From positions 1-64,000 of the IMG/VR virus record IMGVR_UViG_3300024503_000485: a stretch of 64,000 nucleotides of DNA. One strand, 5' to 3'. Below are positions 11,159-58,270 of this stretch, one piece after another (positions within the stretch are counted from its first letter, which is position 1; each line of letters opens with the position of its first letter). The notes under the pieces were generated by a model. It was not told the DNA's origin. It saw only the letters and a program-made list of their open reading frames with translations, and did no database searches. The translations under genes were made by a program, and so were the position numbers.

Positions 11159-11647
11159 TTAACTCCAATCAGGTAAAGGGCCTCCGTATTTTTTGCCTTT
11201 GATCTTTTTGCCTCTAACTTTAACACGTTCGCTGCCTACCTTGTGTGATTTGCCGCCTTCTCTTGATCTGTACCCTTGACTCTTGCATGAAGCAAGCTGG
11301 CTGGCTCCAAGGGCACTATCGGGCTTTCCCGATGTACATAAGGCACGCGATGCAGGTTCTTCTGCAACTGCTTCATCGTCTGTGCCACCTCCAAACATAA
11401 CATCATCGTTGATTGGAAAATCTAAATCCATAAAACGCTCAGGTAATTGAGCTGTGCTGATAATCATTTCAAGCTCTTCTTCTGTTGGATGTACTTTCAA
11501 AAGAACTTTGGCAGCTTCATCGTGAGCATCGCCATTTTCCCAAATATTAATATCATAGTGTTCTTTGTAAAGTTCAGCCACGGCCTGCATGACCTTATGA
11601 TAATCTGTGGTGAATATATTTTCTGTAATAATATCTTTTATTTTCAT
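11159..11647 (-). CDS. putative internal head protein
   Basis: N-terminus MKIKDIITE resembles T4 capsid-targeting peptide; basic Cys-containing C-terminus. Confidence 0.5.
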   Translation of the reverse strand: MKIKDIITENIFTTDYHKVMQAVAELYKEHYDINIWENGDAHDEAAKVLLKVHPTEEELEMIISTAQLPERFMDLDFPINDDVMFGGGTDDEAVAEEPASRALCTSGKPDSALGASQLASCKSQGYRSREGGKSHKVGSERVKVRGKKIKGKKYGGPLPDWS

Positions 11648-11648
11648 A

Positions 11649-11882
11649 TTAAGCTACCTGAGCAACTGCGTAGATCGCGTTGACTAAAAGTGTTTTAGTA
11701 TCTAGGTCAGTGGCTTCTGCATCAAGTCTATCTGCTCGAACTAGGTCTAACATTAGTTCTCGATATTCATCCGCTGATATACCACCCTGTTGATATTGGC
11801 CAGCAATTTCCAAGGCCATTTGAGCTCTTTGTGCTGCCCAACTTGGGCCATTGGCTGCTAGATGTTGTAGGTGTTCAAACAT
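11649..11882 (-). CDS. hypothetical protein
   Basis: Coupled to lipoprotein gene. Confidence 0.6.
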   Translation of the reverse strand: MFEHLQHLAANGPSWAAQRAQMALEIAGQYQQGGISADEYRELMLDLVRADRLDAEATDLDTKTLLVNAIYAVAQVA

Positions 11883-12271
11883 TAGAATCTCCCAAGGATA
11901 CTAGCTGCGGCACGCTCTGCTTGTGCTGCCATTAGTTTCTTTTTAATTTCACAATAGACCTTAGAACCCTGTTGTGTCTGTGCTCGAGTAACCATGTCTC
12001 CTACGGTTTCCTGTAAGGGTTTGATAATGTTAATAACATCCTGATGTCTACGACCAGCGGATTGGCTGTATAATTCAAACCAACGTAGATCCTGTTGTAT
12101 CTTTAGTACCTGTGGTAACTGCTCTTGAGAGCAGTCCAAACGATCAATGTCTGCACGAACATCGATTATTCTAGAACTTTGATTAGGATCCGAAAAACTA
12201 GGAATCATGCCTACTAGGCTTGAGCAGCCAGAAAGCATGAAAACACATACTAGAGCAATTAGTCTATTCAT
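11882..12271 (-). CDS. lipoprotein
   Basis: Signal peptide with lipobox MLSGC; TAAATA 5 nt upstream of ATG. Confidence 0.7.
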   Translation of the reverse strand: MNRLIALVCVFMLSGCSSLVGMIPSFSDPNQSSRIIDVRADIDRLDCSQEQLPQVLKIQQDLRWFELYSQSAGRRHQDVINIIKPLQETVGDMVTRAQTQQGSKVYCEIKKKLMAAQAERAAASILGRF

Positions 12272-12286
12272 AAAAATATTTAGTTC

Positions 12287-12868
12287 TTAGGCTAGATTAA
12301 ATGCTATGCTGACTCGCTGTTTATCTGTGCGGTTAACTCCTACCTTGTGTGTTAACCAACTAGGAAACATGATCAAAGTTCCTGTTTTTGGCTGTATATG
12401 ATGGCTCTGACGTTGTGGCAGTAGATCTGCGGGCCATAGTCTAAGATGATCTACAGGGTTAGGGCTTTTAAAGGTTAAATTACCCTCATCACCATCTGCT
12501 TGATAATAGTAGCAGCCCGAAATAGCTCGTTCCGGATGTACATGATCGTACATGAAGTTTTTGGGCTCGTAGATATTGACCCAGCTGTCTGTGAGCCTAA
12601 AGGGTCTAACTGGATATTTGATAAAATTACACCAATCACGTAGACTTTCAAATATAGAGTCAGTTAGGTGGTTCATGCCCAGGTCCACAATATCGTTGGA
12701 GCCGTCAAATTTAAAGCTGGAACTAACTTCGTCGTCCCAGGGATTATCCTTGACTTCCAACTGGTCTAATGCTTGTTTGATCTGTGCCTGTACTCGATCT
12801 AGTTCTTCGCCCTCTAGTTCACGTACATAAACAGGAGCATAAAATAAGTGTAGTTTTTGTGATTTCAT
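12287..12868 (-). CDS. putative 2OG-Fe(II) oxygenase (TIGR02466-like)
   Basis: SWVNIY...HVH...ISGCYY...GTLIMFPSWLTH...RVSIAFN; start at ATG 12868 (ATGA overlap). Confidence 0.8.
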   Translation of the reverse strand: MKSQKLHLFYAPVYVRELEGEELDRVQAQIKQALDQLEVKDNPWDDEVSSSFKFDGSNDIVDLGMNHLTDSIFESLRDWCNFIKYPVRPFRLTDSWVNIYEPKNFMYDHVHPERAISGCYYYQADGDEGNLTFKSPNPVDHLRLWPADLLPQRQSHHIQPKTGTLIMFPSWLTHKVGVNRTDKQRVSIAFNLA

Positions 12869-13476
12869 TTGAATACCAAGTAAGTTGAAAGAATGTATTT
12901 GGTTTGTCCGTCTTGGGGCATAAGCCCTGCATGAGGAAAATGCCAAGTGGGTGTGAATATACAGAGCCGACCTCGACGAGCAGCCACGGTCATGTTTTCC
13001 AAAGGAAACTCTGTGCCAGCGTCCGAATCGTTGAGATAAAACAAACAGGCCAAAAATCTAGATGAAGTTTCTAGGGTAGTATTATCAGCGTGTAGTTTAA
13101 ACTCATGACGACCATTGGGTCTATAGCATTTGATTCTAAAACCCTCTAGGGCAAAGTCATAGGGCAAGATGTTTAGAGTGTCCCAATCACGCTTATAGTC
13201 ACTGACCAAGGGTATGACCCTAGCTGAGAGTTGATCGCAGGTCTCAGTCCAATCATAGGCCCAGTGGCTGCTTTTCTTATAAAGATCCCAGGGATTACGA
13301 GCCTGAGGGTGGCGTGTAGAGTGTAGATCTAATTCAATTAATTTGGCCCACTCGCCCGGACGTTCCTTATGGAATCGAGCGCAGAGTTCAAAGGCCTTGA
13401 CCATTTCATCGCAGAATTCTGGGTCAAGGGCAGCGTCAATGACCCGTATGTAGTTTTTGTCGTAGACTATTTCCAT
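12865..13476 (-). CDS. prolyl-4-hydroxylase-like 2OG-Fe(II) oxygenase
   Basis: FKLHAD, RFLACLFYLND, GTEF, GRLCIF...FPHAG, KYILSTY. Confidence 0.85.
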   Translation of the reverse strand: MEIVYDKNYIRVIDAALDPEFCDEMVKAFELCARFHKERPGEWAKLIELDLHSTRHPQARNPWDLYKKSSHWAYDWTETCDQLSARVIPLVSDYKRDWDTLNILPYDFALEGFRIKCYRPNGRHEFKLHADNTTLETSSRFLACLFYLNDSDAGTEFPLENMTVAARRGRLCIFTPTWHFPHAGLMPQDGQTKYILSTYLVFK

Positions 13477-13496: not shown

Positions 13497-14339
13497 CTAG
13501 CTGCCAAATACGATTGTGAATGCTGTTTGTCTAAGGGCCAGGTTATCCACATAGGCCTTGGTAGTGGCCTGAAGGGGTTCTGTTACTGCTTCTGTTAGGC
13601 TAAGGGTACCCAGGGTAGTTATGTGTAGCCATTGGGGGTCTGTGTATTCTTGAGTTTCTAAAACAGCACCCTCTTGATAGGGCCCTGTTTCAAGCTCAAA
13701 GTTTAAGACATAGTCAGGGCCAGTGCCTTCAATGGTCACTGAGCTGCCCGAGCCCGAGGGTCTAGTTGTAACAGAGCCTATGCTGATCTCAGGTGCAGGG
13801 CCTGCGACATAGCCAGCTACCTGTTCACGCCCATCCGACCAGCGATATATGAGATTGCCCGTGGCTGTGTCTACTCTAAGACTTTCTATTTGCTGAGCTG
13901 CGGCCGAAGTTTGTACCACTTCTGTAGTGATCAGCTGTGCCCTAGGCGTTTGAGCAGTTTCATCGCTGACCAAGCCTGAGGTAGTCAAAGCCCAGGTTAG
14001 GCTAAGATTTTCAGCTGTGACAATGTTGTCTGTGGTTAATAGTTCAAGGGGAAACTGAGTGCCCAGAACTGATCTGCCCTTGCGAATGTTCTGTTGATAA
14101 TGATCAAACCAAGCACGTGACCAATCAATTCTATTCTTATACTCTTCACGGTCTATGGTGATGCTGACAATGGTCTGTCCTAGCAGATCCGAGCTAGGCG
14201 GGTTAGCTGTGCGTATTTCCTTACTGGTAAATTTAAGCGCAACTTCTCGAATGGCTCTAGCATTGGCCCTAGTGGGTGTAACTCCTGAGCGTATCAAGGA
14301 GTCTGTGAGCACACGATGTTGATTTTTGGTAAGAGCCAT
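13497..14339 (-). CDS. putative virion structural/fibre-like protein
   Basis: ISIGSVTT...SVTIEGTG...LNF and PLQATTKAYVD segments typical of fibre repeats; late-type TAAATA upstream. Confidence 0.45.
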   Translation of the reverse strand: MALTKNQHRVLTDSLIRSGVTPTRANARAIREVALKFTSKEIRTANPPSSDLLGQTIVSITIDREEYKNRIDWSRAWFDHYQQNIRKGRSVLGTQFPLELLTTDNIVTAENLSLTWALTTSGLVSDETAQTPRAQLITTEVVQTSAAAQQIESLRVDTATGNLIYRWSDGREQVAGYVAGPAPEISIGSVTTRPSGSGSSVTIEGTGPDYVLNFELETGPYQEGAVLETQEYTDPQWLHITTLGTLSLTEAVTEPLQATTKAYVDNLALRQTAFTIVFGS

Positions 14340-27189: not shown

Positions 27190-27516
27190 ATGAGCAAATT
27201 AGAATACCTTGCAAGACCTCTGGTAGCATTCGATGCTTATAACAAAGATCATAGGCGCTACTACGCAGAGTTCCTAGAATACGGTGGATGGGGGCGATGT
27301 CCAGTTCGCTTTATTTGTCCCAGTGATTCCGGTTCAGATCTAACACTAATGATCAAGAACCACCTAACTGAATACTACATTGATCGCGAGTTTGGGGGCG
27401 GCAAACTGCAACAGCTCAAAAGCGAAGAACTCAGCGAAACCGCAGACGAAATGTATCGAAGAGCAGGGAAACTTCGTAAGGAAGCAGCCGCCCTGTTGAA
27501 TCCCAGGAGAACCTAA
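27190..27516 (+). CDS. hypothetical phage protein
   Basis: RPLVAFDAYNKDHR...WGRCPVRF. Confidence 0.7.
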   Translation: MSKLEYLARPLVAFDAYNKDHRRYYAEFLEYGGWGRCPVRFICPSDSGSDLTLMIKNHLTEYYIDREFGGGKLQQLKSEELSETADEMYRRAGKLRKEAAALLNPRRT

Positions 27517-32390: not shown

Positions 32391-32915
32391 TGTCGTAAAT
32401 ACAAGATATGCTTCTAGTGTATCTTGAACCTTTTGTTCGTGAGCAAGAGGACCTACTACAATCCTGGCGGGATCTAGTACACTATTGGCCTCGTAGTTAT
32501 GCGCACACAGATGCTTATAACTCTGCTATACCTACAGATTGGTGGCTCTTGTTTAGGGATGCTCGTTACTCTAGTATATGGTTGATCAAATACCCTGAAC
32601 ACTCAAGAATTATGCTGACCTTATTCGACTAAAAAATCTTGCGCTTGGCGCTTCGCGCTAAAAAATTGCGCTGCGGCTTCGCCGATCTTGATAAATATTC
32701 GAAACAGGAGCAATCATGCCACAGGCCTATAAAATCATGGCACGTAACACTAGAACAGGTGTCAGAATACAAAAACAATTTCTAGATGGAGCCACCGTCA
32801 CAAACTATGATATGGCTCTAGAACACGCTCAAGATCTAGCTCAGCGTCAAAGTTCACGCAGTCGCGAAACTTGGGTGGGCGAAGTAGAAATCTACACCGT
32901 GGGCAACAAGCCCGG

Positions 32916-33405: not shown

Positions 33406-34299
33406 ATGTTTTACCAGATAAGTATGCTTATGACAGAACCGAGATTATTCATTACCGGCGATAGCTTTGCCATATTTCCCAAAGATCCTGATCCAGTGAA
33501 AAATTGGGGACTGCTCTTAGCTGACCTGTTGGGTCAGGAATTAGGACAGACCCTACAGGTGGTCAATAACAGCCTTATGGGCTGTGCTCAAGATTGGAAT
33601 TGGCTGAGTCTTCAAAATTGGTACGAACATACAATCACAGAACATGACTATGTGGTCATAGCTCTAACTCATCCTAGCCGTCAGTGGTTCTTTGAAAACA
33701 GCCCTGAAATTGCCAATGCTAATCTAATTGATCTAGATCGTTGGGTCACTCGAGAGCAGGCCAAGACCGTAGAGCTGTTTATCAAATACATGCAACGTCC
33801 TAGTTTAGATCTAATAGCAGTTCAAAATCGTTTGGCCTATTTGGCCTATATGACTAGACTTAAGGGTCTAAGGCCGCCTGTGATTATGAAATGTTTTACA
33901 CAGGAATTTGGACAGGCCAATACGTGGCCAGATCTTAAGATTGCTCAGGGTGATCTAATGAACATACAACGTTATGAGTTTGAGGACATAGACATAGATA
34001 TTCGTTCGGATTTTTGGAAAGGACTAGACAGCAGGTACAATCATCTGTGTAGATCCAATCACACCATCCTAGCTCAAAAGGTCTTTGACACCCTAACCAA
34101 AGGCGCAGAGTTAGATCTTACCACAGGGTTTATTCAAGGTCTGCTTAAAAACAATACTCTTGATGACCTAGACTTTGTTCAACGAGAATTGGATTATCCT
34201 ACGTTTCTAAAAAATCGTGAAAAGCTCAAAAAGAGCCGTGGTCCAATACTGCCGTGGAAAACCAGAGTTAATATCCAAACCGGACAGGATGATGCTTGA
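33406..34299 (+). CDS. SGNH/GDSL hydrolase-like protein
   Basis: FITGDSF block I; NHL...NH near C-terminus. Confidence 0.55.
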   Translation: MFYQISMLMTEPRLFITGDSFAIFPKDPDPVKNWGLLLADLLGQELGQTLQVVNNSLMGCAQDWNWLSLQNWYEHTITEHDYVVIALTHPSRQWFFENSPEIANANLIDLDRWVTREQAKTVELFIKYMQRPSLDLIAVQNRLAYLAYMTRLKGLRPPVIMKCFTQEFGQANTWPDLKIAQGDLMNIQRYEFEDIDIDIRSDFWKGLDSRYNHLCRSNHTILAQKVFDTLTKGAELDLTTGFIQGLLKNNTLDDLDFVQRELDYPTFLKNREKLKKSRGPILPWKTRVNIQTGQDDA

Positions 34300-34344
34300 C
34301 ACCTGCTGTTAATCTTAGTATAATACATAGACAAGGAGACCACA

Positions 34345-35025
34345 ATGTTTGATTCAATTACAACTTATCGTTCAGCTGAAGCTATCAATAGTGCCATGGC
34401 CAGTGTTTATAAACACATGGGTCTAGCAGTATTGACCAGTATGATCGTTTCATTGTTTGTAGGAACCAATCCTGCACTATTGGCCTTTTTCTTTACAGGC
34501 TTTATAAAATGGATTGTTATATTTGCACCGCTGGTAGCTATTATTGCTCTTAGTATGAATATGGATTCTATGAGCAAGGGCACAGCACAACTAGCTCTAC
34601 ATGGCTTTGCCGCGCTAATGGGCTTGAGCTTTGCTACTATCTTTGCTGTCTACACTATGGGCAGTATTTTTTCAGCTTTTATGAGTGCCGCAGTATTGTT
34701 TGGCGTTATGAGCTTTTATGGTTATTTTACCAAGAAGAGTTTAGATAGCCTAGGCCAGTTTATGTTCATAGGCCTAATTGCCATTATCATTGCTAGTCTA
34801 ATCAATATCTTTATTGGCAGCACCTTAATGCAAATGGTTATTTCGGCTATTGCTGTTATTATCTTTCTAGGCCTTACTGCCTACGACACACAAAAGATTC
34901 GAGAAATGGTCAGCTATGATACAGCGGAAGGCAATGCTGAAATTGTTGGCGCACTAACTCTGTATCTTGATTTTATTAATCTTTTCCTAAATCTTCTACA
35001 ACTATTTGGCGGTAGAAAAGATTGA
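34345..35025 (+). CDS. yccA: Bax inhibitor-1/YccA family membrane protein
   Basis: Seven hydrophobic segments; AYDTQKI, GALTLYLDFINLF; promoter TTGACA 34296-17-TATAAT. Confidence 0.9.
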   Translation: MFDSITTYRSAEAINSAMASVYKHMGLAVLTSMIVSLFVGTNPALLAFFFTGFIKWIVIFAPLVAIIALSMNMDSMSKGTAQLALHGFAALMGLSFATIFAVYTMGSIFSAFMSAAVLFGVMSFYGYFTKKSLDSLGQFMFIGLIAIIIASLINIFIGSTLMQMVISAIAVIIFLGLTAYDTQKIREMVSYDTAEGNAEIVGALTLYLDFINLFLNLLQLFGGRKD

Positions 35026-35585
35026 ACGAATATGTTTTATTCCCTACAATAGTTAGGGAATACGATTTCAGCAAGGACCCAGATTTTCATGTCCTTGCTG
35101 ATTTTGTTTCTAAACAAAAAACAGAACCACATAGACTAGTAGGCTGGGCAGAAAGCAGTTACGGTGTAGGCCGTAGTCTTTTTGATAATTTTATTCTCAA
35201 AGGCATACGACAAAAACTACAGGCCGCTGTTGATGCATATATCATTGAACTTGGTATAGCACCAGTTAAAATAACCAATAGTTGGTTTAATAAACTAGGT
35301 CAACATCAACGTGTAGAAACTCATAGACATGAATTAAGTGTTGTGTCAGGAGCATTCTATGTTCATGCAGATCCCGGTAGTGTGGGACTAAAATTATTCA
35401 GTCCTTTGGCACAACTTCGTATGTACGAACAGATTGTAAATCACAATGCTGTTAATGCTAATTTTATTGAAATGGAATGTTGTACAGGTCAGCTAATTTT
35501 ATTTCCTAGCTGGATAGAACACGGAACCGATAATAATCAAACCGATAGTAGAATTACGGTTAGTTTTAATACAGAATATTGTTAG
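35022..35585 (+). CDS. putative 2OG-Fe(II) oxygenase (TIGR02466-like)
   Basis: SWFN...HRH...VSGAFYV...GQLILFPSWIEH...RITVSFN. Confidence 0.8.
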   Translation: MNEYVLFPTIVREYDFSKDPDFHVLADFVSKQKTEPHRLVGWAESSYGVGRSLFDNFILKGIRQKLQAAVDAYIIELGIAPVKITNSWFNKLGQHQRVETHRHELSVVSGAFYVHADPGSVGLKLFSPLAQLRMYEQIVNHNAVNANFIEMECCTGQLILFPSWIEHGTDNNQTDSRITVSFNTEYC

Positions 35586-36276
35586 TCTGTTCTAGACTAA
35601 GTTCTTGATCTTCTAATTCACGAATCTTTTCAGTAATCTCGTCAATAAGACCTAGGTTACGTAGAATCTTAAAAACTAGATTTTCCACAGACCATTCTCC
35701 GGCACGCTCAAGTCCGGCCTTTCTCATAGTAGTAATTTTTTCTTTTACTGCTCTAAGTTTTTCTAGATCCTTAGAAACCATCGCTTCTTCAATGGCTTTC
35801 ATTATACCATCTTTCTTTGCTTCCACGGCAGCATCGTCTACTTCCGGCTTGACCTTCTTTGGTTCTACCAGCCATTGACCTTTAGCTATGCTATACACTC
35901 CTGTGCTGTGGTGCGGCTCATCTTCTCCTTGAACATAACATTCAACTGGAAGACCTTTGATAGTGATAGTGTGTTGTTCTGCCCAAAGTGCCTTTTTGGC
36001 GCTGTATAATTCTCGTTCGTCGTCCGTTGGAGAACCTTTGACAATGACATGAAGATCTAGGTCAGAATGTTTAGTCCAGGTATAATTTGCATTAGATCCT
36101 GTTATGGTATAATCAACAATATCTAGATCCACTCCAACAAAATCTACAAAGGCTTTGGCAATGTCCATTAGTTTGGCTTCAACTTCTAGATCTAATGAAT
36201 CACCGTCCCATATTCTAGGATTTAATCTTTTATTGACCGTAACAACAGAAGATGCTGTAAACTCACGTAACTTCAT
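35566..36276 (-). CDS. Pol-beta-superfamily nucleotidyltransferase with capsid-targeting-like N-terminus
   Basis: TGSNANY...SDLDLHV, VECYVQ; starts MKLREFT. Confidence 0.75.
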   Translation of the reverse strand: MKLREFTASSVVTVNKRLNPRIWDGDSLDLEVEAKLMDIAKAFVDFVGVDLDIVDYTITGSNANYTWTKHSDLDLHVIVKGSPTDDERELYSAKKALWAEQHTITIKGLPVECYVQGEDEPHHSTGVYSIAKGQWLVEPKKVKPEVDDAAVEAKKDGIMKAIEEAMVSKDLEKLRAVKEKITTMRKAGLERAGEWSVENLVFKILRNLGLIDEITEKIRELEDQELSLEQTNNILY

Positions 36277-36675
36277 TTAAACTCCAAATCGATTACGTTT
36301 TTTTGTTGCAACAGGACTGCTCTTATTGACGTCTTTGGTTTCATGACTACCTGTTGATGTAATTTGTTTTTTAGCACTAGAACTTAAACCAATTTGATTT
36401 AATGCATCATCAATAATATCTTTGGTTGTGTTAGTATAACTAATAACAATAGCGTTTTCACCCCAAGGACTTTTTGCTTGAAACGTATCTCTTTTAATAA
36501 CGTCGTCTTTGGCTTTATTTGCTCGAGCATTTGCTAAAGCAACACCAAATCGGTATTGCTTATATGGGTCTTGATTAGGTAGAGCAGGAATAACAAATGC
36601 GCTTGGAATCGCTTCCGCGACATCGTCTTCCATGCCATTCTCTCTAGACTCTTGAATAAATTCTTTAGCTCTCAT
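36277..36675 (-). CDS. putative internal head protein
   Basis: Start MRAKEFIQE at 36675 (TAATG overlap). Confidence 0.55.
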   Translation of the reverse strand: MRAKEFIQESRENGMEDDVAEAIPSAFVIPALPNQDPYKQYRFGVALANARANKAKDDVIKRDTFQAKSPWGENAIVISYTNTTKDIIDDALNQIGLSSSAKKQITSTGSHETKDVNKSSPVATKKRNRFGV

Positions 36676-37301
36676 TAGCAGTTCCAACGTCTACGTGCTT
36701 TACAGATTGCCTTATCTGGAGTTTTCGAACAATCAATGTGATGCATTTTCTTTTGACCGGCTGATCTTGAGCAATAGCTCTTACGACGTTTGCTGGCCTT
36801 AGAACCTTTTTTAAGTTTACTTGGTTTGGTAGTTACAGCAGTTTTTAATTTGCTGCCTGGATGTTCTCTACGATAAGCATTAACAGCTTTTTTGCTCATG
36901 CCATCGGTTTTGTCTTTCTTGTTGACTTTTTGCCAATCTTCTAATACAGGTTGTGTAACTGCAAACACATATAATTCGTCATCAGTTAGAGATTCTAAAT
37001 CTTCCCATACTAGATCAACATCAACTTGATTATGTTCTGCAATTCTAGAAATGATAGATTCGATTAAATCAAATTCTTGTTCTAGACTTTCATTTTTAGG
37101 TTTTTTGCCTTGCTTTTTCATATTGACAGCAATAGCTGCCTGTTGTGCCGGGCTACCTGCTTCATCGACACTTTCGTTAGGAACGCAATTATTAACACGA
37201 ACACCACCTTTAATTTTGGTGCCCTCTTTGTGCTTGCCTTTCCAACATTTAGCGTCTAAACGTTGTTTTATAGCTTCTGTAATAAATTCTTGTGCTCGCA
37301 T
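36675..37301 (-). CDS. putative internal head protein
   Basis: MRAQEFITE; CWKG...NNCVP, AYRREHPGSKLKTAVT, SYCSRS...RRRWNC. Confidence 0.6.
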   Translation of the reverse strand: MRAQEFITEAIKQRLDAKCWKGKHKEGTKIKGGVRVNNCVPNESVDEAGSPAQQAAIAVNMKKQGKKPKNESLEQEFDLIESIISRIAEHNQVDVDLVWEDLESLTDDELYVFAVTQPVLEDWQKVNKKDKTDGMSKKAVNAYRREHPGSKLKTAVTTKPSKLKKGSKASKRRKSYCSRSAGQKKMHHIDCSKTPDKAICKARRRWNC

Positions 37302-37322
37302 AGTGTAAATCCGATTAATACA

Positions 37323-37568
37323 CTATTTAGCCCATCTTAGGTGATACTCTACTTCTATTTTAGAATCGTAAAATTCTACTACAAGTGCAAGATTTTCAGC
37401 TATTTTTTCAACAACTAATTGACACTTTGTTTTGGGCTGAGCTAAAATCCATTCTAAATGATCTACACCAATCAGCTTTTGTATTTTAGGCCAATCTATA
37501 TCAATGTTGCCAACAACTTCAATATCTGGGGACGACCACTCTGCTAGAGTAACTTTAGTATGTTTCAT
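37323..37568 (-). CDS. hypothetical protein
   Basis: Overlaps helicase stop. Confidence 0.55.
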   Translation of the reverse strand: MKHTKVTLAEWSSPDIEVVGNIDIDWPKIQKLIGVDHLEWILAQPKTKCQLVVEKIAENLALVVEFYDSKIEVEYHLRWAK

Positions 37569-39000
37569 CTTCAGAGCTCATCGAATTTAAAATCTCACGC
37601 AATTTTGTAGATTCGACATTAGCTCTTACTTTACCCAAACTTGCACCTTGTGTAGGATCTGTAATAACTCCATCACTATCTACGTTCTTTGGTGCTTGTA
37701 CGGTTGTTCTTGATTTGATAGATTCGATAATACTAGAACTTCCTCTACTTGCCCCTGCGTGTTCTTGTTCGTCTTCTGGTAGATCAGAAATCTTTAAACT
37801 TTCTAGATTAAATTCTAAATCTACCTTCATACCAACACCGCTAGAACTACGTGTTTTCATAAGTTGAATTTGATAGCGTCCACGTTCACGCATAGCACGT
37901 GATGTAAAAATACCAAACACATTATCTGCGGTTTGAATTTTACTTAAACCACCTGAAATATGTGAATGATCAAATTCTACTTCTTCAACAGCGCCACGAT
38001 TCAACTGACTCGCAGTTACAAGTATACAATTCTTTTCTACTGCTAGATTACGCAATTCTTCCGATACATATTTGTCTTTAATAAACAAATCTGCTGGACT
38101 AATTTTCTTACTCATAGGCATTAATAAGTCTAGATAGTCAACTAACAATACATCAACTTTTCTGCCTGTTTTAATTTCAAATTCTTTTAGATATGCTCTC
38201 AGATCGTTTGCAGTTTTACCAGAAGGCATATATTTGATTTGCAATGCTCCAGATTTCTTTCCAATGATCTTAACTTTCATTTCAACATCGTCAAGATCTT
38301 TAAAAATTTCTTTTGTTGGAATTCCAGTTGTCATTGCATCAATACGCATAGCAACTAAATCTTCCGAAAGTTCTAATGTTAGGTACACGACGTTAAGTCC
38401 TTGCAAACACCAATTAACACCTAAGTTTGCCAAGAACAAAGATTTACCTGCACCCGAACCACCGGCAAAAATATTCAACTCTCCGCGGTTCATTCCACCA
38501 AACAATTTACGATCAAGACTTGGCCAACCTGTGCTAATTTGTCCGTTCTTATCTTTAATTTTTAATAAACGAGCTCTCGGGTCTGCAAAATAATCAGTGC
38601 CCATATCTTTAGTTAAAGATATTTGAACTGCTTCTTTAATCTTCGTTTCAACCTGACCGTAGTCTTTCTTTTCTAATAAATCTGCTGAGTCAATGATTGC
38701 ACGTTCAAGCGCCTTGTGCCTAGTAAAAGACTCGAATTCATCCATTAGCCATTCGTTGTGACCTTCTTTTATATCTTCAGGTTTTTTAAGATCTATCCTG
38801 CAACTTGCATTAACCATTTCATAGTCAGGCAATACAGCATATTCTTTTGCATACACATTGATAAATTCTGCTGCATCTTGTAACTTTCGATCAAACAATG
38901 TGTGATCAAAGATACCTTGACAACGAACAAATACTTCTGCATCTGCAAGCATCAACTCGAGATATAATTTTTGTACTTCGTAATCGTATGTTTTTATCAT
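37555..39000 (-). CDS. replicative DnaB-like helicase (T4 gp41-like)
   Basis: GGSGAGKS, TLELSE, LVDYLDL, TASQLNR, MKTR. Confidence 0.95.
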   Translation of the reverse strand: MIKTYDYEVQKLYLELMLADAEVFVRCQGIFDHTLFDRKLQDAAEFINVYAKEYAVLPDYEMVNASCRIDLKKPEDIKEGHNEWLMDEFESFTRHKALERAIIDSADLLEKKDYGQVETKIKEAVQISLTKDMGTDYFADPRARLLKIKDKNGQISTGWPSLDRKLFGGMNRGELNIFAGGSGAGKSLFLANLGVNWCLQGLNVVYLTLELSEDLVAMRIDAMTTGIPTKEIFKDLDDVEMKVKIIGKKSGALQIKYMPSGKTANDLRAYLKEFEIKTGRKVDVLLVDYLDLLMPMSKKISPADLFIKDKYVSEELRNLAVEKNCILVTASQLNRGAVEEVEFDHSHISGGLSKIQTADNVFGIFTSRAMRERGRYQIQLMKTRSSSGVGMKVDLEFNLESLKISDLPEDEQEHAGASRGSSSIIESIKSRTTVQAPKNVDSDGVITDPTQGASLGKVRANVESTKLREILNSMSSEDETY

Positions 39001-56371: not shown

Positions 56372-57552
56372 TTTAGTCCTTTCAAAATAGTTTCTAGTAA
56401 TAGTAAATCGTTGTCATTAACAAAATGATTGTTTCCAATATAAACACCAACATCGTGTAATATGTCGGCATTATGAGGGCTGTCTGTTTCAATATTATAT
56501 TTTTTTAAAAATGGATGTTTTAATAAATTTCCACTTACTACAGGCCGATATTCGATGCCGTGTTTTTTAAATTCGTCTAATAGTGTTATATATGTTTCTT
56601 TACTTTTACAAATAAAAGGAAAACAGAAACTACTATTAGTTTCATCTTCTTTAGGAAAAAAGAATTTATCAGGATATTGTTTAATAATTTTTAAATATTT
56701 TTTAAAATTTTCTTTACGGATATGAATCATGCTATCCAATCTTTTTAGTTGTGACATACCTAAAATTGCAGGTAACTCATGATTTCTAAAATTATATCCG
56801 TCTGTCATAAACAGAAAACTAGGAGGCAAGTTTGGATATTCATCTTGATATTTTTTAAAATATTCGGGAGATCCTTCTCTAGCTAGACCGTGACTTCTTT
56901 TTAATCTCATCAATTCATATAATTCTTGATTGTTTGTGGAAATCATTCCTCCCTCAACGGTAGTCATGTGATGGCCGAAATAAAAGCTAAAAGTTGCCCC
57001 TAAAGAATCTGAACCTCTTTTTTTGTTATTAGGATCGCAAACACCGTGTGATTCGCAAATGTCTTCTAGTATGAGCGCATCTGGAAATATTTCTTTGTAT
57101 TTTTCTATTTCAGCATCTAAGCCCAACAGATGTGTGACAAATATTATTTTAATGTCTTTATGTTTATTTTTTAATTTTTTTAACTTTTCAACATCGTAAC
57201 TAAAAGTTGATAAATCAATATCTGCAAAGATTGGTTTAAATCCAGTTTGAATTACTGGGGCAACGTTTGTGACCCATGTACACGCAGGAACTAAAACTTT
57301 ATCCCCGTCTTTAAAATTATATAACTCTTTAATAGCAGATAATAATAATAAATTTGCTGTGCTGCCAGACGAAACAAATAAAGAATATTTAGAACCTAAC
57401 CATTCATTCCACTGAGCCTCAAATAATTTTACTTTTTCTCCGTTAGTGAATTTTTTTGAAGTTAAAATGAACTTGATCATTTTAAATTTGTCTGGCCAAG
57501 TAATTGTATCTTTCATTAAAGGCCATTTTAGTATTGGTGGTTTATTGATCAT
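56368..57552 (-). CDS. colD: ColD-like GDP-4-keto-6-deoxymannose 3-dehydratase (DegT/DnrJ fold)
   Basis: SSGSTAN, LEDICESHG, FSFYFGHHMTTVEGG (His at the usual Schiff-base Lys), GYNFR, EYRPVVSGN. Confidence 0.75.
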   Translation of the reverse strand: MINKPPILKWPLMKDTITWPDKFKMIKFILTSKKFTNGEKVKLFEAQWNEWLGSKYSLFVSSGSTANLLLLSAIKELYNFKDGDKVLVPACTWVTNVAPVIQTGFKPIFADIDLSTFSYDVEKLKKLKNKHKDIKIIFVTHLLGLDAEIEKYKEIFPDALILEDICESHGVCDPNNKKRGSDSLGATFSFYFGHHMTTVEGGMISTNNQELYELMRLKRSHGLAREGSPEYFKKYQDEYPNLPPSFLFMTDGYNFRNHELPAILGMSQLKRLDSMIHIRKENFKKYLKIIKQYPDKFFFPKEDETNSSFCFPFICKSKETYITLLDEFKKHGIEYRPVVSGNLLKHPFLKKYNIETDSPHNADILHDVGVYIGNNHFVNDNDLLLLETILKGLK

Positions 57553-58270
57553 GGTAACAAATTGCCGTATGGTTTATATAAATTTCCGAGTAGCCGCGAA
57601 GATGAAATTCTTCGCAAATAATTGAAGTATCGCAATCAAATTTTTTAAATCTTTCATTAAACCAGCCGTACCGTGCACCGTCCTGAAATGGTTTTGCATC
57701 AAATAAGCATACTCCGTTACATGTTGAATAATATTTTCCAAAAGGAGTAATATCCCAATCTTTATGTAATTTTCCTCTGTCTTCGTCGGCGTGTCTTCGT
57801 GTAGCCCAAACATCATATAATTTTCCGTTTGTTCCTTTTGAAACCATTGATACAATATCAACTTTTGTTAAATTATATGTTTCTTGAAAATTTAAAATTT
57901 TTTCAACATCTTGTAGATCAAATCTCATATCGGATTCAATATCTAATATATGATCTACATTGTTAAGAAAATTTTTTGCTTCGATTGCTTTATTTCTTGC
58001 TGCTGCTAAATTTTTTACACGCTGTTCATCTTTAACAGAATGAAAAAATTCTGTTCCTATATTTTCGCAGATAATAGAAAAATCTTTAGCGAAGGACCAA
58101 TCTAAATTATTCAATTTAATTTTGGTATCATCAGTTGAATCGTTTTCATACAAAGAAATATAAAAATTATAATTAGGAAAATGCTCAACTATTGATTTTA
58201 TTTGAGAATAATATTGTTCTATTTTTTGACTAGAATTTCTAAAAATAGTGTATATCAAAATGTTTTTCAT
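57542..58270 (-). CDS. glycosyltransferase-like protein (GT-A)
   Basis: YENDSTDDT, LAAARNKA, YDVWA. Confidence 0.65.
   Translation of the reverse strand: MKNILIYTIFRNSSQKIEQYYSQIKSIVEHFPNYNFYISLYENDSTDDTKIKLNNLDWSFAKDFSIICENIGTEFFHSVKDEQRVKNLAAARNKAIEAKNFLNNVDHILDIESDMRFDLQDVEKILNFQETYNLTKVDIVSMVSKGTNGKLYDVWATRRHADEDRGKLHKDWDITPFGKYYSTCNGVCLFDAKPFQDGARYGWFNERFKKFDCDTSIICEEFHLRGYSEIYINHTAICYHDQ

Follow-up and report, generated by a model that had tools for sequence, protein, structure and literature searches.

Candidate T4-like capsid-targeting leaders on three adjacent genes, one encoding a nucleotidyltransferase, in a jumbo phage from river metagenomes

Does a large T4-type phage carry an enzyme in its head and send it into the host with its DNA? 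The question is raised by three contiguous minus-strand genes in a 64,000-nucleotide stretch of DNA (the window; positions 1 to 64,000 of IMG/VR virus record IMGVR_UViG_3300024503_000485). Gene A (36675–37301) encodes a protein of 208 amino acids (aa) with an isoelectric point (pI) of 9.6 that starts MRAQEFITEA; gene B (36277–36675) encodes a 132-aa protein that starts MRAKEFIQES; and gene C (35566–36276) encodes a 236-aa protein (pI 5.0) that starts MKLREFTASS and contains a Pol-beta-superfamily nucleotidyltransferase (NTase) domain and a C-terminal helical bundle. An earlier note, made from the sequence alone, described a late operon of proteins with T4-like capsid-targeting N-termini, one of them an NTase proposed to be packaged and injected. 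The three starts were confirmed on the minus strand, as was the start MKIKDIITE of the gene ending at 11647 (11159–11647, minus strand), a further leader-bearing gene whose 162-aa product continues with N after the leader. By analogy with T4, we consider it somewhat probable that all three proteins are carried as cargo by a capsid-targeting system of the T4 type, the phage being a jumbo phage of about 350 kb.

A viral contig of 219,444 bp (37.8% G+C; completeness estimate, 62%), which originates from river metagenomes, has the window as its first 64 kb. Close relatives reach 353 kb (98% complete) and, judged from these sequences, the contig is part of a T4-type jumbo phage genome of roughly 350 kb. 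It encodes a gp23 capsid protein (PF07068, E 3e-98), a gp21-family prohead protease of the Peptidase_S77 family (PF03420, E 1e-25; genome 119469–120095, minus strand), a T4-type portal (Portal_T4, E 7e-108) and the gp17 large terminase, together with a small-terminase-like gene and a gp22-like open reading frame (ORF) between the protease and major capsid protein genes. A gp55-like late sigma factor was recognized by a weak but significant match (E 1e-5). The protease, capsid protein and portal that characterize a T4-type head-internal protein system are all present.

The N-terminal leader

Using a strict pattern for the leader (^M.{2,5}[ED][FY][ILV].E), we found matches at 5 of the 243 ORF N-termini of the 219-kb genome and after none of its 1239 internal Met residues. 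Similarly, in the 98%-complete 353-kb relative, the pattern occurred at 3 of 442 N-termini and after 0 of 1956 internal Met residues. The simpler motif [LI]xE, ending at residues 8–10, was enriched at N-termini in both genomes (p = 0.009 for the 219-kb genome and p = 0.001 for the 353-kb relative); a gp22-like scaffold protein is among its N-terminal matches. The leader set of the phage comprises MRAQEFITE, MRAKEFIQE, MRLNEFITE, MRAKEFVIE, MKTFREYLAE and MKLREFTAS, and the motif is borne by A, B, C and at least five other ORFs. These carriers, each with a T4-like leader of approximately 10 residues, are otherwise mutually unrelated and mostly without a known family; several are small and very basic, or of low complexity. 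The sequences that encode the leaders differ synonymously (CGA/AGA, GCA/GCT, TTT/TTC and ATT/ATA), indicating that selection acts on the peptide.

Conservation within the B family reveals which residues of the leader are kept. In 120 homologues of B, with identities down to 35%, positions 1–7 and 9 are nearly fixed and E9 is essentially invariant; position 7 is I, V or L, and no fewer than 14 different residues occur at position 8. The conservation of the leader was 0.84, as compared to 0.56–0.69 in the remaining protein. This combination of a hydrophobic P3, a free P2 and Glu at P1 in the family's counterparts of the B leader (MRAKEFIQE; 36649–36675, minus strand) matches the (L/I)-x-E rule of gp21. 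The leaders of A and B end in I-T-E and I-Q-E, respectively, in agreement with this rule, and cleavage of A is predicted after I7-T8-E9 (MRAQEFITE; 37275–37301, minus strand; compare T4 ipII and ipIII). The window's C, which reads F-T-A, departs from it.

The T4 leader invoked in the earlier note, that of IPIII, was read from the T4 record, NC_000866, together with those of ipI and ipII. As the note states, ipIII starts MKTYQEFIAE; this is followed by A, and ipII starts in the same way, whereas ipI starts MKTFKEFTST and is cleaved further downstream. The 10-residue capsid-targeting sequence (CTS) of T4 and its cleavage are documented (PMC8442874). Mutagenesis established that the processing determinants are residues 8 and 10, that is, I and E, that Asp at P1 blocks processing while still allowing targeting, and that aromatic residue 4 contributes to targeting (PMC9026906). 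MKTYQEFIAE and MKTFKEFTST are nearly superimposable on MRAQEFITE, MKTFREYLAE and MKLREFTAS. Moreover, as in the T4 internal protein (IP) system, a short leader ending in (L/I)-x-E is shared by proteins that are not otherwise related, several being both small and basic, in a phage that has homologues of gp21, gp22 and gp23. In contrast to T4, at least 8–10 carriers are predicted per genome, and no similarity to the T4 IPs was detectable in the mature parts of the leader proteins. The description of the N-termini as T4-like is supported for A and B, which closely resemble T4 leaders and obey (L/I)-x-E; C has Ala at P1. In full-text literature searches on capsid targeting in cyanophages and in T4-like jumbo phages, the only papers found dealt with T4 and SPN3US, and no earlier description of this leader set was seen in the literature searched.

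The leader pattern is kept across orthologues while its residues drift. Specifically, the orthologue of the 11647 gene in the 353-kb relative starts MRINEILTE instead of MKIKDIITE, after which the two proteins continue with the identical NIFTTDYHKVMQA. The leader is portable: unrelated proteins share it in this genome and in the 353-kb relative, and in another relative it stands at the start of a 705-aa protein. The 353-kb relative has a 60%-identical homologue of A (L077:16580–17137) whose leader reads MKLYEILTE and whose gene belongs to another cluster of leader genes. This displacement and the hypervariable gene content of the locus recall the ip loci of T4, and these sequences suggest that cargo genes pass from one leader locus to another, as in the T-even ip loci.

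The phage's own capsid protein reads ...RKYLAE/SATAGATS near the position that aligns with the N-terminus of mature T4 gp23*; its predicted maturation site, after E41, is YLAE followed by SATAGATSAGNV. The leader protein encoded at 68259–68843 of the genome, between a gp16-like gene and gp17, starts MKTFREYLAE/S and so copies this site. An 85-aa protein (pI 10.3; genome 202505–202762, minus strand) starts MKIRDILE followed by SATAGATSSANIG; its start, MKIRDILE/SATAGATS, repeats the residues on either side of the predicted maturation site of the capsid protein. The 85-aa protein could be a competitive substrate or a mimic of the capsid interior. A predicted complex of the gp21-like protease with residues 1–40 of B scored 0.00, which is evidence neither way.

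Two further observations concern the distribution of leaders. A single 389-aa protein (genome 202966–204135, minus strand), in which a 5'-deoxynucleotidase (NT5C) and a GH19 lysozyme/chitinase domain are joined, starts MRAEEF and sits in a cluster of leader-bearing small basic genes. In Synechococcus phage DSL-LC02 (L004:2331–2504) and phage Bellamy (L009:1149–1304), small basic proteins start MKTFQDFLEE and MKSFKQFQES; one of the two adjoins an NTase homologue and the other adjoins a DUF6321 protein and the terminase. Judging from these starts, T4-like leaders may be widespread in cyanomyoviruses.

The proteins behind the leaders

The assignment of C to the Pol-beta family, originally made on a GS...DxD motif, was upheld. 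C has G60-S61 and D72-L-D74 and matches Pfam NTP_transf_2 (PF01909) with 23.9 bits, above the curated gathering threshold of 21; it also matches phrog_36119 (E 6e-49). The catalytic core (residues 53–117; 35926–36120, minus strand) is formed by a strand followed by G60-S61, D72-L-D74 and E112, and so contains the hG[GS]x9-13Dh[DE]h motif and a third carboxylate. G60, S61, D72, D74 and E112 are invariant in an alignment of 61 sequences and, on the strength of these residues, C is predicted to be catalytically intact and should be active. In a model generated using AlphaFold2 (AF2; predicted local distance difference test (pLDDT) 92.7), the core strands are present and the Pol-beta core is followed by a helical bundle. 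Both the Pfam score and the fold place C in the superfamily. Residues 1–10 lie outside the confident fold (mean pLDDT 62).

Within the superfamily, the structural neighbours of C are diverse. The best Foldseek matches were NTases, including ANT(9)/AadA and CD-NTases (E 2e-5 to 1e-3), and class I adenylate cyclases and minimal MNT-type NTases were also among the neighbours; TM-scores were about 0.27 (about 0.22–0.27 for the CD-NTases) and identities 10–15%. A wide search using VIA-align returned mostly unrelated helical bundles matching the C-terminal domain, and its only meaningful matches were the minimal NTases 2rff and 1ylq, which match the N-domain (Z 7.3 and 6.7, respectively). The DrrA AMPylase gave a weak profile match (E 0.011). 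C shares the Pol-beta fold and a C-terminal helical domain with ANT(9)/AadA and the CD-NTases CdnE/CdnD, and the fold with the MNT minimal nucleotidyltransferases. No family-specific Pfam or NCBIfam model matches C, and A and B have no NCBIfam match either. C belongs to the Pol-beta superfamily but to no characterised subfamily. A structural comparison with CD-NTase families, proposed as a check in the earlier note, gave no support for membership, as judged from the TM-scores and the absence of a match to a family hidden Markov model.

Several known contexts for such an enzyme were considered and rejected. C does not qualify as a CD-NTase/CBASS cyclase, as there is no CBASS context and its neighbours are B and a 2-oxoglutarate (2OG) oxygenase. 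It does not represent an MNT-HEPN toxin–antitoxin pair, as C has 236 residues and a helical C-domain, unlike an NTase of the minimal, ~100-aa type, and there is no HEPN protein among its neighbours. A PADLOC search with A, B and C matched only models of candidate systems, PDC-S09 (E 3e-5) and PDC-M70A (E 0.013). Finally, C is a single-domain protein and not itself a polyvalent protein with at least two effector domains; its homologues P0178, P0193 and P0134 are.

The NTase family of C is large, with 3747 cluster representatives at E ≤ 0.001. Of 130 representatives with an N-terminal NTase, 89 have at least 450 residues. Four long representatives were scanned: one contains SLT, LysM and Amidoligase_2 domains, another ART-PolyVal, a third GP88, and the last gave a weaker Amidoligase_2 match. 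The domain that stands alone in C is thus the N-terminal module of polyvalent proteins of 500–2288 aa with SLT, LysM, Amidoligase_2, ART-PolyVal or GP88 domains. For the class of phage polyvalent proteins, packaging and injection have been predicted (Iyer, Burroughs, Anand, de Souza, Aravind 2017; PMC5512222). One long polyvalent-type NTase gene has ATAAATA 6 nucleotides (nt) upstream of its ATG. In the phage studied here, a 1133-aa ORF in the polyvalent-protein slot (genome 205354–208755) had no BLASTP relation to P0178 and P0193 (E above 0.5). The lineage's own DnaJ and a ClpB-like double-AAA+ ATPase adjoin this slot (genome 210591–213748, minus strand; L067:1469–4563).

T4 Alt is a packaged and injected ADP-ribosyltransferase that is loaded into the head by means of a cleavable N-terminal propeptide and that modifies host proteins. 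The likeness to C lies in the predicted route of loading and delivery and in the relatives of C that are fused to ART-PolyVal ADP-ribosyltransferase domains; C itself is a Pol-beta NTase, not an ADP-ribosyltransferase, and its packaging is predicted.

The N-terminus of C is conserved within its family. Irrespective of the type of phage, 93 of the 130 representatives have the motif M-[ND]-I-x-E-L-[ED]-S-[YF], which is ancestral to the very large NTase family and not an addition peculiar to this phage. Among the 120 closest homologues of C, 104 have [LFI]-x-E at residues 6–8, with a variable middle residue. Because the window's C has Ala at P1, its leader is like that of T4 IPI (MKTFKEFTST) rather than that of IPIII. 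By analogy with the T4 variant that has Asp at P1 and is targeted without being processed, this C may be loaded into the head without a cut at residue 8.

A is a mosaic basic protein that matches phrog_727. The 9-residue leader is followed by a Cys-pair module, CW..G...VxNCVP (residues 19–40; 37182–37247, minus strand), an acidic linker and a basic, Cys-rich C-terminal DUF6321 domain (residues 129–206; 36684–36917, minus strand; PF19846, E 2e-9). The DUF6321 domain is up to 78% identical to cyanophage proteins, and the Cys-pair module also occurs in cyanophage proteins encoded beside terminase genes; in P0208 it is fused in front of a C-type NTase. Together, the modules of A build cyanophage proteins encoded between gp15/gp16 and gp17, namely B23 gp266, P-SSM2 gp114 and Bellamy gene 123, which is a late, head-packaging neighbourhood. 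B is of no known family, has a conserved PYxxYRFGxA core and a conserved C-terminus, and is predicted to be mostly disordered (AF2 pLDDT 62.8, with residues 1–15 below 50). A, with its basic, Cys-rich modules, and B, being small and disordered, are likely DNA-associated or inhibitor-type internal proteins.

Gene order and the CTAAATA element

A is preceded by an 81-aa ORF (37323–37568, minus strand), which lies between the leader-bearing genes and a gene for a DnaB/gp41-like replicative helicase (37555–39000, minus strand; PF03796, E 3e-20; phrog_19, E 4e-70). The ORF and the helicase gene overlap by 14 nt and have the same orientation as A–C. A and B meet at TAATG, in which the ATG of B overlaps the stop of A; B and C meet at TAAATG, in which the ATG of C abuts the stop of B, and the last codons of B, GGA GTT, provide a GGAG Shine–Dalgarno sequence for C. 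In 53 related loci, the order is helicase, ~80-aa ORF, optional A, optional B and NTase; A is present in near-identical contigs only, and B in only some of the 53. Comparison of these loci indicates that the A/B position is a variable slot, comparable to the T-even ip loci.

The TAAATA at 37324–37329 was present as reported, in the context GCTAAATAG. Read on the minus strand from 37329 to 37324, it is part of a CTAAATA element (37324–37330) that resembles the core of a T4-type late promoter. The element forms part of the 3' end of the 81-aa ORF, where it shares nucleotides with the final codons and the stop (GCT AAA TAG), 22 nt before the ATG of A. In related loci, the ~80-aa ORF always ends ...GCT AAA TA(A/G). 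Moreover, GCTAAATA is invariant in 32 distinct related sequences whose flanking codons vary synonymously, indicating a signal at the nucleotide level; under free synonymous choice, the chance of the element is 0.17 per independent lineage. CTAAATA lies 4 nt before the next ATG in the relatives, and the distance of 22 nt here is due to the insertion of A.

Across the genome, TAAATA is under-represented, peaks 4–7 nt before ATGs, and precedes gp17, the portal operon, the scaffold/protease/capsid-protein operon and several leader genes. This placement before head-gene operons fits a T4-type late promoter core. Among the leader genes, that at 68259–68843 has ATAAATA 5 nt upstream and that at 202505 has TAAATA 7 nt before its start. 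CTAAATA alone was rejected as a general late-promoter word: only 8 of its 48 copies are followed by a start within 40 nt, as compared to 23 of the 30 copies of ATAAATA, and it is accordingly not diagnostic. TAAATA occurs 4–7 nt before the ATG of 19 genes, those in the window being 11882–12271, 12865–13476, 13497–14339, 27190–27516, 32408–32632 and 57542–58270; an AGGAG-type Shine–Dalgarno sequence precedes 127 of 242 genes. With T4-like spacing, transcription from these elements would start about 5–6 nt downstream of TAAATA and hence at or next to the ATG, which, by analogy, points to leaderless late mRNAs. A scan of the 33–41 kb region for sigma-70 promoters and terminators yielded counts at the level of shuffled sequence (31 versus 26 promoters and 6 versus 4.7 terminators), with no internal terminator and no convincing promoter for A–C.

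On the opposite strand, a gene for a 2OG-Fe(II) oxygenase (35022–35585, plus strand; PF13759, E 2e-20) converges on C and overlaps its 3' end by 20 nt. It follows a gene for a membrane protein of the Bax inhibitor-1/YccA family (34345–35025, plus strand; PF01027, E 6e-52), which is preceded by a perfect TTGACA-17-TATAAT promoter (34296–34324) and has the highest depth of RNA contigs in the region. Elsewhere in the genome, a gene that lies behind a TAAATA element and directly upstream of the portal gene (123661–126894, minus strand) codes for a basic protein of 1077 aa that has a GH19-like segment and may be a head-borne or ejected lysozyme.

Proposed packaged cargo and its alternatives

For A, B and C, we infer targeting, cleavage, packaging, injection, late timing and a substrate by assuming that the leader works as in T4. 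Each protein would bear a leader of 8–10 residues of the form M-[KR]-x-x-[ED]-[FIL]-[ILV]-x-E which, by analogy with the T4 CTS, would dock it onto the scaffolding core during prohead assembly. The gp21-family prohead protease would then cut after the Glu of [LI]-x-E, and the mature protein would be retained in the head and enter the host with the DNA. C, in which the N-terminal domain of giant phage polyvalent effectors stands alone, would be active at the very onset of infection and would nucleotidylate a target, either of the host or of the phage.

Several observations weigh against this account. Most leaders have 9 residues instead of the 10 of T4, and those of A and B are without the aromatic residue 4. 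The N-terminal motif of C is kept across a very large family, and the phages of that family may have proteases of other types; moreover, the window's C is acidic, unlike the classic basic internal proteins, and, having Ala at position 8, the predicted P1, is among the 16 exceptions in the 120 closest homologues. NTase homologues are found among replication genes in T4-like cyanophages and Cr30, some of them without a clear leader; cultured phages with the NTase include Synechococcus phages S-CRM01 and DSL-LC02 and Caulobacter phage Cr30. In contrast to the T4 system, the locus sits directly behind a helicase gene, in a series of overlapping or abutting ORFs with no terminator between them, so that read-through from earlier promoters is equally possible. 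Metatranscriptome contigs over 34.3–39.8 kb have low, roughly even depth and no 5' ends and are uninformative on timing. The phage is uncultured and known from river metagenomes alone. The designation of A–C as a late operon is partly supported: the conserved CTAAATA and the gp55-like sigma factor speak for it, and it is weakened by the possible read-through from the helicase and because CTAAATA is not generally promoter-proximal.

These observations can be assembled into other explanations. In one, which we consider rather unlikely, A–C share transcripts with the helicase, are made in the early or middle phase and act in the cytoplasm, and the NTase is not packaged but has, for example, a role in anti-defence or in the modification of nucleotides or nucleic acids inside the infected cell. 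The shared N-terminus would then serve another purpose: it could be a recognition or activation tag for the phage's chaperones of the DnaJ/ClpB type or for another protease, or a helix for protein contacts. The single-strand arrangement of helicase, 81-aa ORF, A, B and C is as expected from such co-transcription, as is the depth of RNA contigs, which is similar over A–C and the helicase; the position that NTase homologues have in cyanophages and Cr30, next to primase, DNA polymerase and regA, and that of DnaJ and the ClpB-like ATPase beside the polyvalent-protein locus are also in keeping with a cytoplasmic role. Such a role leaves unexplained why P3 and P1 are fixed while P2 is free, why the context of the capsid protein's maturation site is copied, why the leaders resemble an experimentally defined T4 CTS, and why TAAATA precedes several leader genes at 5 and 7 nt (68259 and 202505, respectively). 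Less likely still is a division in which the interior of the head receives A, B and the rest of the small basic leader proteins but not the NTase, whose N-terminus would be no more than an ancestral helix, M-x-[IL]-x-E-[LF], belonging to the structure or regulation of its family. The acidity of C and its lack of a P1 Glu would be accounted for, as would the occurrence of its N-terminal motif as a family trait in any phage type and in a register one residue off that of the A and B leaders. Against such a division stand the [LFI]-x-E of most close homologues, with its variable middle residue, the near identity of the start of C to that of T4 IPI, the position of residues 1–10 outside the confident fold, and the place of the domain at the N-terminus of polyvalent proteins, for which, as a class, packaging is predicted (PMC5512222). 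Finally, MK and MR starts are common in AT-rich phage genomes, and a loose form of the motif follows 7 of the 1239 internal Met residues of the 219-kb genome, such that the resemblance might reflect chance or composition, that is, AT-richness, Lys-rich second codons and common helix formers. This explanation is disfavoured, and we regard it as very improbable: the strict motif is confined to N-termini in two genomes, the leader is conserved throughout the B homologues, and the synonymous codon differences reflect selection at the protein level. The leader set is, by analogy, a plausible variant of the known T4 capsid-targeting system.

Proteins injected with phage DNA act before phage gene expression and are a main route past host defences; to our knowledge, nearly all examples so far come from a small number of cultured phages. 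Were the leader to function as in T4, injected proteins of uncultured T4-type phages could be listed from sequence. The large uncharacterised NTase family would become a candidate for effectors of the first minute of infection; it has about 3700 cluster representatives, and in many of these the NTase is joined to an ADP-ribosyltransferase, lysozyme or amidoligase domain. The T4 head-loading system already serves as a tool for protein delivery, and it would have natural variants with different cargo. More tentatively, and with rather less than even confidence, we propose that the T4 leader is an ancient portable address tag used across the T4 superfamily, in T4, cyanophages such as DSL-LC02 and Bellamy, river jumbo phages and maybe giant polyvalent proteins. 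The leader rule, together with a gp21-type protease, would then read out the injected set of a phage, here at least 8–10 proteins, and the conserved leader-coding sequence would drive the shuffling of cargo genes from locus to locus. If so, the set injected by this phage would include a Pol-beta NTase and an 85-aa mimic of the capsid maturation site.

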